From Macrostomum lignano (Eukaryota): a stretch of 64,000 nt of DNA. Numbering within the stretch: the stretch's first letter is position 1; the number at the start of each line of letters is the position of its first letter. The DNA is taken from the NCBI GenBank assembly GCA_002269645.1, contig NIVC01000650.1, forward strand, positions 1 through 64,000, in the 5' to 3' direction. Positions 2,998-4,208 of this stretch are shown piece after piece. The translations under genes and the position numbers were made by a program. The notes under the pieces are model-generated. The model did no database searches and was not told where the DNA came from. It was given only the letters and a program-made list of their open reading frames with translations.

Positions 2998-3331
2998 TCA
3001 TCCAGGACTGAATTCAGAAGTGCTATGAGCAGAGTATAAAGGAGCAACAGAGCAGCATCACCCACCGCCAGACGTATCGATCCTTTTTCGACGCTCGTCG
3101 CTCAAGGTGTCGATAGCGTTTGAGCAGCGTCTCGCGAGCAATTTCGTCATCATAGGGCTCGACGGTCTCGAAGCGCCGTTTCAGCGTGAACATGTTGCTC
3201 CAGGGACTCTCGTCACCTCCGTCGTTCGCGGGGACGGCATTGACAACGGCGTCCTTGGCAACGAGGCTGCCGGCAAGGAGCACAGCGCCGGACAGGACCA
3301 GCAGGGAGGCGAAGGCGTTGTTGCCGAGCAT
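2998..3331 (-). CDS. Candidate secreted prepropeptide (neuropeptide precursor), about 96 aa; coding exons 3331-3066 and 3022-2998
   Basis: Hydrophobic signal peptide MLGNNAFASLLVLSGAVLLAGSLVA, then KRR/KR/RR/KK sites. Removing a 43-bp GT..AG intron (3065-3023) gives the C-terminus DRYVWRTSEFSPG-stop. An upstream 5'UTR intron runs 4068-3340 (AG|GTGAGT ... CCTGTCCTCAG). Confidence 0.62.
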
Positions 3332-3368
3332 GAGTTCCACTGAGGACAGGAAGATTGCGATTGGATAG

Positions 3369-3980
3369 CTATCTATCTATCTATCTATCTGTCTATCTAT
3401 CTATCTATCTATCTATCTATCTATCTGTCTATCTATCTATCTATCTATCTATCTATCTATCTATCTATCTATCTATCTATCTATCTATCTATCTATCTAT
3501 CTATCTATCTATCTATCTATCTATCTATCTATCTATCTATCTATCTATCTATCTATCTATCTATCTATCTATCTATCTATCTATCTATCTATCTATCTAT
3601 CTATCTATCTATCTATCTATCTATCTATCTATCTATCTATCTATCTATCTATCTATCTATCTATCTATCTATCTATCTATCTATCTATCTATCTATCTAT
3701 CTATCTATCTATCTATCTATCTATCTATCTATCTATCTATCTATCTATCTATCTATCTATCTATCTATCTATCTATCTATCTATCTATCTATCTATCTAT
3801 CTATCTATCTATCTATCTATCTATCTATCTATCTATCTATCTATCTATCTATCTATCTATCTATCTATCTATCTATCTATCTATCTATCTATCTATCTAT
3901 CTATCTATCTATCTATCTATCTATCTATCTATCTATCTATCTATCTATCTATCTATCTATCTATCTATCTATCTATCTAT
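3369..3980. repeat. (ATCT)n microsatellite, about 150 units, followed by a short (AT)n to 4026
   Basis: Nearly perfect tetranucleotide run. It lies inside the predicted 5'UTR intron of the peptide gene. Confidence 0.99.
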
Positions 3981-4161
3981 AGATATTTATATATAAATAT
4001 ATATATATATATATATATATATATATCTATTTATCTATTAATAAACTATTCATACTGTACAGACTCACCTTCTAATTAGGAGTTTTCAGTTTTACGAATA
4101 TATCAGCTGGTTTTGGTGAAAGTCACTGCGAACAGCTACAGCTTGATCCTCTGTTCAGTGC

Positions 4162-4208
4162 CTTATATAGCAACAAGCTACCAGTATTCGAGCTTGAGCT
4201 CCCATTGG
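4162..4208 (-). promoter_or_regulatory. TATA box plus CCAAT box for the minus-strand peptide gene
   Basis: Minus strand reads CCAAT (4208-4204), then TATATAAG (4169-4162). About 30 nt further is a putative TSS near 4138 and a short exon ending at the consensus donor at 4068. Confidence 0.55.

Follow-up and report, generated by a model that had tools for sequence, protein, structure and literature searches.

A compact orphan gene of Macrostomum lignano with a putative small secretory-pathway product and three candidate C-termini

The locus and its public gene models

The minus strand of a 64,000-nucleotide stretch of Macrostomum lignano DNA (contig NIVC01000650.1, positions 1 to 64,000, hereafter the window) carries a compact gene with an untranslated first exon, a microsatellite-filled intron and one undisputed coding exon. 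A first-pass annotation of this DNA had read it as the gene for a possible amidated neuropeptide, and every feature that it described lies where it was placed: the CCAAT motif, the TATA box, the exon of 5' untranslated region (5'UTR), the donor, the (ATCT)n intron, the acceptor, the ATG, the leader and the basic sites. The interpretation we favor, with modest confidence, is that of a lineage-restricted (orphan) M. lignano gene encoding a small secretory-pathway protein, with a coding sequence that runs unspliced to a TAG.

The locus is not new, as two UniProt models already cover it. A0A1I8J0S9 (M. lignano, 119 amino acids) is a model at the same locus; its residues 1-86 (MLGNN...KKDRY) are identical to the open reading frame (ORF) of the window, from which it departs after Tyr86 to continue with TLREISKIRQFVFRTDVCCLQELSTAKIKLLEN. 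Its cluster mate A0A1I8I466 (465 amino acids) maps to the same stretch of the window and has residues 23-86 of the ORF and the terminal exon in common with A0A1I8J0S9; antisense ORFs that cross the adjoining TRAF gene make up its first ~370 residues. A0A1I8I466 is thus an annotation chimera and grossly wrong, and both models are doubtful at their 3' end. Their names, "RxLR effector protein" for A0A1I8J0S9 and "40S ribosomal protein S15" for A0A1I8I466, are automatic labels without any Pfam domain match and were set aside.

Searches for relatives returned nothing outside the locus itself. A word-indexed search of 5.8e9 proteins with the 96-amino-acid protein that results if a short 3' intron is removed found no homologue beyond the two UniProt models, and a filter-free phmmer search of the read-through ORF against 1.84e9 representatives returned A0A1I8J0S9 only. 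Exact look-ups of the 96-, 102- and 105-amino-acid forms likewise yielded nothing beyond these models, there was no Pfam match, and a scan of JGI metagenomes gave no match. The first-pass annotation had not recognized the family, and these results bear it out. They yielded no relatives, in databases from which other Macrostomum species are essentially absent. As a control, a TRAF exon of the window was used as a query and matched no M. lignano protein, which indicates that these databases hold essentially only the UniProt models for the species; a lack of transcript-derived proteins for the gene is therefore uninformative.

The coding exon and the gene's 5' end

The continuous ORF encodes 102 amino acids (MLGNNAFASLLVLSGAVLLAGSLVAKDAVVNAVPANDGGDESPWSNMFTLKRRFETVEPYDDEIARETLLKRYRHLERRASKKDRYVWRWVMLLCCSFILCS) and stops at a TAG at 3025-3023. 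To measure its coding character, a codon table was compiled from those TRAF, MFS and DAP3 exons of the window that Pfam confirms, 1,264 codons in all. By this measure the coding exon (3331-3066) scores +52.8 bits in frame 0 compared with about -2.5 bits in the other two frames, and the GC content at its third codon positions (GC3), 0.74, falls inside the span of 0.66-0.80 shown by the reference exons. Of all frames at this site, on both strands, that of the ORF has the highest score (62 bits, versus 42.6 for the antisense). We conclude with good confidence that the main coding exon belongs to a real gene; no paralogue was found within the window.

Upstream of this exon, the individual promoter motifs carry little information. 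The CCAAT 5-mer alone occurs at chance level, and TATAWAAG by itself is also at chance, with 13 found and 9.3 expected. Perfect AGGTRAGT donors are rare on the minus strand, with just three sites in 64 kb, and one of these lies 93 nucleotides (nt) past the candidate TATA box, with no ATG in the 93 nt between them. The start of exon 1 was placed near 4135, ~30 nt after the TATA box. Intron 1 consists almost entirely of a (CTAT/ATAG)x167 microsatellite and an AT run (3369-4038), and the first AUG of the spliced leader is at 3331 with an in-frame TAA upstream. TATA box, consensus donor, 729-nt intron and first AUG form a coherent 5' end, which supports the earlier description of a compact gene of two exons, driven by a TATA box, with an intron in its 5'UTR and an ORF that begins at the first AUG.

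In M. lignano, trans-splicing adds a leader ending in AUG to approximately 30% of genes (PMC8629364). With the spliced-leader sequence from the same source, trans-splicing at 3340 would leave the leader AUG in the wrong frame, at the start of an overlapping ORF of 53 codons. Cis-splicing of exon 1 is for this reason the better reading.

The leader and the protein body

The first 25 residues (MLGNNAFASLLVLSGAVLLAGSLVA) are probably a signal peptide, as judged by hydropathy and cleavage-site heuristics. The hydrophobic core spans residues 8-25, Kyte-Doolittle means over 11 residues reach 2.7 across residues 11-21, and the -3/-1 rule is satisfied, as a heuristic, at AGS/L and LVA/K (the slash marks the cut, here and at splice sites below). 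The earlier identification of a 25-residue hydrophobic leader is upheld in this sense. The hydrophobic run is long, and it may instead serve as an uncleaved anchor. The body that follows, of ~64 residues, is highly charged and helix-prone, with 14 basic and 12 acidic residues and no Cys, and it contains the basic clusters KRR (51-53), KR (71-72), RR (78-79) and KK (82-83). In the read-through form it is followed by a short, hydrophobic, Cys-rich tail of 13 residues, WVMLLCCSFILCS.

Three candidate C-termini

Three endings compete at the 3' end of the gene. In ending (a), the ORF is read through to the TAG at 3025-3023 and finishes in ...DRYVWRWVMLLCCSFILCS, that is, with the tail WVMLLCCSFILCS. 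Ending (b), proposed in the first-pass annotation, removes a 43-nt GT..AG (3065-3023, GTGGGT...CTCATAG) to give ...DRYVWRTSEFSPG-TGA with the stop at 3000-2998; a variant uses the next acceptor, TTCAG/T at 3008, to remove a 58-nt GT..AG and ends in RPG-stop. Ending (c) is that of the UniProt models, which splice from 3073 to 2736 and close with TLREISK...LLEN. All three are predictions.

Third-position GC of the three tails was set against the distributions observed in local windows of coding and of non-coding sequence. In tail (a), 10 of 14 codons end in G or C (P = 0.15 for coding and 0.033 for non-coding windows), for a likelihood ratio of 4.6. Tail (b) has only 2 such codons of 8 (P = 0.011 and 0.20; ratio 0.05), and tail (c) has 18 of 33 (P = 0.030 and 0.055; ratio 0.54). 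The codon score of tail (c) is -3.1 bits over its 33 codons, versus ~+20 bits predicted at the main-exon rate of ~0.6 bits per codon. No GC3-rich exon was found downstream on the minus strand.

The splice sites that endings (b) and (c) would use can be set beside those of the species and of the window. In M. lignano, 65% of donor sites read GT[G/A]AG, and most acceptors are CAG (PMC8629364); six of the seven readable, homology-supported donors of the window are GTRAG and the other is GTTGGT. The donor of ending (b), GTGGGT, misses the consensus at +4, and that of ending (c), GTCTGG, is much worse. A homology-guided reading of the TRAF, MFS and DAP3 genes gave eight well-supported neighboring introns of 113-1800 nt, none of them shorter than 100 nt, and no other microintrons were seen in the neighboring genes of the window. 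Local microintron candidates did come out of a search for GTRAG..YAG pairs that connect open frames, but all of them were spurious. Neither the TATAAA nor the AATAAA downstream decides between the endings.

On these grounds ending (a) seems to us the probable one, if not by much, ending (c) would be unlikely and ending (b) quite unlikely, with the rest of the weight falling to other splice combinations or to no stable product. The first-pass proposal of a 43-nt GT..AG yielding SPG-stop is confirmed in sequence and frame, while the splice itself is unsupported, given its off-consensus donor, the GC3 values and the local intron sizes.

Table 1. Features of the gene and of its candidate 3' ends, in window coordinates
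Feature	Position	Strand	Remarks
CCAAT motif	4204..4208	-	~35 nt upstream of TATA box
TATATAAG, candidate TATA box	4162..4169	-	one of only 3 on the strand; 93 nt before perfect donor
Exon 1, non-coding 5'UTR	4069..4135	-	3' end fixed by donor GAAG/GTGAGT; 5' end ~4135 by inference
Intron 1, 729 nt	3340..4068	-	GTGAGT...CCTCAG; microsatellite-filled; acceptor CCTCAG/TGG
Exon 2, undisputed part	3066..3339	-	8 nt leader, ATG 3331-3329, codons 1-88 + CG of R89 (MLGNN...KKDRYVW)
Signal-peptide-like segment, residues 1-25	3257..3331	-	possible cleavage after S22 or A25
Disputed 43 nt	3023..3065	-	codons 89-102, (R)WVMLLCCSFILCS + TAG (favored), or microintron GTGGGT...CTCATAG
Hypothetical terminal mini-exon of ending (b)	2998..3022	-	C ACT TCT GAA TTC AGT CCT GGA TGA = TSEFSPG-stop; otherwise 3'UTR
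TATAAA, possible variant poly(A) signal	2888..2893	-	130 nt after TAG
Intron of UniProt models, 337 nt	2737..3073	-	TAC/GTCTGG ... TTTTTTTATTTTGAATTCCAG/A; donor very poor, acceptor strong
Terminal exon of UniProt models	2635..2736	-	TLREISKIRQFVFRTDVCCLQELSTAKIKLLEN + TGA
AATAAA	2433..2438	-	sole canonical one downstream on the strand

Neuropeptide hallmarks against chance

The hallmarks that suggested an amidated neuropeptide were weighed against their expected frequency. The KRR, KR, RR and KK sites, which had been read as convertase sites, are present, but they are not significantly enriched: the four clusters hold five adjacent basic pairs, versus 2.6-2.8 in shuffles of the mature region (P = 0.07-0.11). 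A Gly before a basic site or a stop, the substrate of peptidylglycine alpha-amidating monooxygenase (PAM), does not occur in the continuous ORF or in the UniProt models, and a Gly-stop appears solely after removal of the candidate 43- or 58-nt GT..AG. The undisputed exon contains no Gly-basic motif, and only one copy of a candidate peptide is present.

Such an ending is readily obtained. Of 60 possible GT..AG removals near the end of the ORF, five produce a Gly-stop; among 134 control ORFs of at least 80 codons in the window, 13 can be given one through some GT..AG of 30-100 nt, eight of them with a YAG acceptor (6-10%). An imperfect direct repeat at 2935-3002 on the minus strand (GGATGAGGATTCCGGATT and GGATGAGGATCCCGGATT) provides GGA-TGA (Gly-stop) at two separate places, and this explains why a Gly-stop here results from several different ad hoc introns. 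Given this frequency of Gly-stops, the amidation signal weighs about ten-fold rather than a thousand-fold, and the GC3 result outweighs it. We do not class the gene as an amidated neuropeptide precursor, since the Gly that defines one appears solely under a candidate splice and the searches found no conserved counterpart of the peptide.

Interpretation and alternatives

Under the interpretation we favor, transcription would start ~30 nt downstream of the TATA box (4169-4162), and a non-coding exon of ~65 nt would be cis-spliced over the 729-nt intron to exon 2 through the splice sites observed there. Translation would begin at the first AUG (3331) and continue unspliced to the TAG at 3025-3023 to give 102 amino acids. 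The leader of 22-25 residues would direct co-translational entry into the endoplasmic reticulum and leave a mature protein of ~77-80 residues, composed of the charged, helix-prone body and the short hydrophobic Cys-rich segment WVMLLCCSFILCS, which might serve as a membrane anchor or else be trimmed away. Furin, or convertases of the prohormone convertase (PC) type, could cleave at KRR, KR, RR and KK; no amidated product would be expected from the read-through form.

Several observations weigh against this account. The last 30 nt before TAG/C at 3023 are 77% pyrimidine, which places the site in the top 1% of YAG sites, and they resemble a real 3' splice site. The DNA of the signal peptide is itself 70% pyrimidine, so that coding for hydrophobic residues looks alike; endings (a) and (b) are hard to separate because pyrimidine richness fits a 3' splice site and hydrophobic coding equally. 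The GC3 tests rest on 8-33 codons, and both public gene models prefer the splice from 3073 to 2736. A single-sequence AlphaFold model is all-helical, with helices predicted at 45-54 and 62-101 at low confidence (predicted local distance difference test, pLDDT, of 64), and is silent on function. A membrane span would usually be longer than the 13 residues of the hydrophobic tail, and the basic residues just before the tail would be lumenal, contrary to the positive-inside rule. By inspection, no good omega site for glycosylphosphatidylinositol (GPI) anchoring is present: the spacer before the tail is KKDRYVWR, and the only small residues upstream, A80 and S81, have Lys at omega+2. The short tail, the missing omega site and the lumenal basic flank are the reasons for listing a hairpin membrane protein and a non-amidated prohormone among the alternatives.

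The amidated neuropeptide, which we now regard as improbable though not refuted, would require that the microintron (43 nt at 3065-3023, or 58 nt) be removed to leave a Gly-stop precursor; once the signal peptide was off, cutting at KK (or KRR) followed by PAM would then release the Macrostomum-specific peptide DRYVWRTSEFSP-NH2 (or DRYVWRP-NH2). This GT..AG keeps the correct frame when removed and contains no internal AG, its pyrimidine tract is the one described above, and a yUnAy-like TTTAT lies 14 nt upstream of the acceptor. M. lignano microintrons shorter than 75 nt are on record (PMC6530080), the combination of signal peptide, basic sites and terminal Gly is the classic layout of a prohormone, and flatworms possess PC2 and many amidated peptides (PMC2953531). 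Set against this, the donor GTGGGT falls outside GT[G/A]AG (PMC8629364) and the intron would lie at the 3' end of the gene, unlike the microintrons of Opisthorchis felineus (PMC6530080). The GC3 of the mini-exon is one found in 1.1% of coding but 20% of non-coding windows, whereas the candidate intron itself has the in-frame GC3 of coding sequence, and the local introns are all longer. The Gly-stop lies within chance, the enrichment in dibasic sites is not significant, and the candidate peptide is a single copy that matches none of the planarian prohormone peptides and for which the searches gave no homologue. As a non-amidated prohormone, the protein would be cut at KRR, KR, RR and KK to release free-acid signals, such as FETVEPYDDEIARETLL or the N-terminal 25-mer, with any of the C-termini. 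A small precursor that has a signal peptide, acidic spacers and four basic clusters suits this proposal, and planarian prohormones do yield non-amidated peptides (PMC2953531, Table S4); we nevertheless consider it unlikely, as the basic clusters are not significantly more frequent than in shuffles, no copies are repeated and no similarity to known peptides was detected.

The splice of A0A1I8J0S9, which leaves after ...KKDRY and joins 3073 to 2736, would produce a secreted protein of 119 amino acids ending in TLREISKIRQFVFRTDVCCLQELSTAKIKLLEN with no amidation signal. Its junction is common to both public models, its acceptor TTTTTTTATTTTGAATTCCAG/A is strong, and the sole canonical AATAAA (2438) stands ~200 nt past its stop. 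This product is doubtful, given the very poor donor TAC/GTCTGG and a terminal exon without coding signal by either codon score or GC3. Little weight can be given to the splice choices of an annotation that also made the antisense chimera across TRAF, and this splice would leave the pyrimidine-rich, GC3-periodic 43 nt unexplained. Least probable of the named alternatives, and in our view very unlikely, is a two-helix membrane hairpin, with an uncleaved N-terminal anchor, a C-terminal tail anchor and a cytosolic charged loop, or else a young ORF without settled function. The N-terminal hydrophobic run of ~20 residues, long for a signal peptide and with no basic residue before it, points toward the hairpin, as do the basic residues that flank both hydrophobic segments on the loop side in keeping with the positive-inside rule; the lack of homologues anywhere in the databases searched would fit either proposal. 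The hairpin is opposed by the 13-residue length of its C-terminal segment and by the acceptable signal-peptidase sites at AGS/L and LVA/K, and the young ORF by a strong codon bias that argues for a translated rather than accidental frame.

Comparison with known systems

A comparison with the prohormones of Schmidtea mediterranea and other platyhelminths (npp, spp, npy and related genes; PMC2953531) shows a shared plan, namely a small precursor with a hydrophobic leader, acidic spacers and KR, RR or KK sites. The M. lignano gene differs from them in that its undisputed exon has no Gly-basic motif, it offers a single candidate peptide rather than repeats, and there is no sequence homology. None of the listed planarian families (RL/RMamide, RFamide, Wamide, RRVVamide, NPY and others; PMC2953531) ends in SP-amide, and the strings FSPG, SPGK, SPGR, VWR, EFSP and RYVW do not occur in the planarian prohormone tables of that study. 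A full-text literature search for five peptide strings found no occurrence. A likeness to orcokinin and pedal peptides (DDEIAR versus the FDEIDR motif) was considered and dropped, as the SGFG-type C-terminal part is missing.

The candidate intron shares with flatworm microintrons (shorter than 75 nt; PMC6530080) its length of 43 nt, its GT..AG ends, a length that is not a multiple of three and a pyrimidine tract. It differs from them in its off-consensus donor, in an acceptor of TAG rather than the modal CAG and in its coding-like third-position GC. The microintrons of the liver fluke O. felineus have splice sites nearer consensus and a 5'-biased position (PMC6530080), whereas the candidate falls within the final 15% of the coding sequence. 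The read-through product, for its part, has the same two-ended hydrophobic layout as small type I and GPI-anchored surface proteins, but differs from them in having a tail of just 13 residues and no small omega/omega+2 pair upstream of it (A80-S81-K82).

The gene appears to work like a generic small secretory precursor, and its locus offers a clear-cut case of an orphan secretory gene. It also illustrates how readily an intron chosen after the fact yields a Gly-stop ending. Were the amidated form real, it would be a previously undescribed orphan neuropeptide without relatives in planarians, flukes or tapeworms, in a flatworm model with transgenesis and RNA interference, and it would imply that functional C-termini can hide behind microintrons overlooked by annotation pipelines.

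Neighboring features in the window

A TRAF-like gene lies on the plus strand at 6700-10790, with a RING domain at 7527-7796, zf-TRAF at 8774-9112 and MATH domains at 9223-9585 and 10461-10787. In UniProt it is apparently represented by the antisense chimera A0A1I8I466 alone, which thereby masks a genuine gene. An MFS (SLC17/sialin-like) transporter gene of at least three exons is found at 22181-25816 (plus strand), its first long intron filled by a 23-bp minisatellite of 66 copies (22901-24389). The gene for DAP3, or mitochondrial ribosomal protein mS29, occupies 27792-30854 on the minus strand in three exons that match the Pfam profile at 1-40, 40-176 and 181-310; both of its introns contain minisatellites, of 34 bp x26 (29528-30419) and 20 bp x27 (28245-28780).

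Retroelement remnants of the non-long-terminal-repeat type are represented by two long ORFs with reverse transcriptase (RT) and RNase H, at 12500-14410 and 39909-42062 (both plus strand), the latter inside an island rich in GC (0.57). At 652-1026 on the plus strand lies a fragment of a mariner/Tc1-like transposase (Pfam Transposase_1, HDNARP motif). A 23-bp minisatellite unit, AAACAATCATAGAAGCGTCATGT, occurs 47 times at 17641-18709 and, inverted, 133 times at 46729-49774, 28 kb apart. A 21-bp tandem repeat at 54494-55096 and 55882-56518 (plus strand) has a perfect splice-donor consensus, AGGTAAGT, in each unit and contributes ~45 of the 51 AGGTRAGT matches in the window. Finally, a 360-amino-acid ORF at 35467-36549 on the minus strand, Ser/His/Arg-rich, of low complexity and without a Pfam match, reaches a codon score of 74.7 bits and is possibly another lineage-specific gene.

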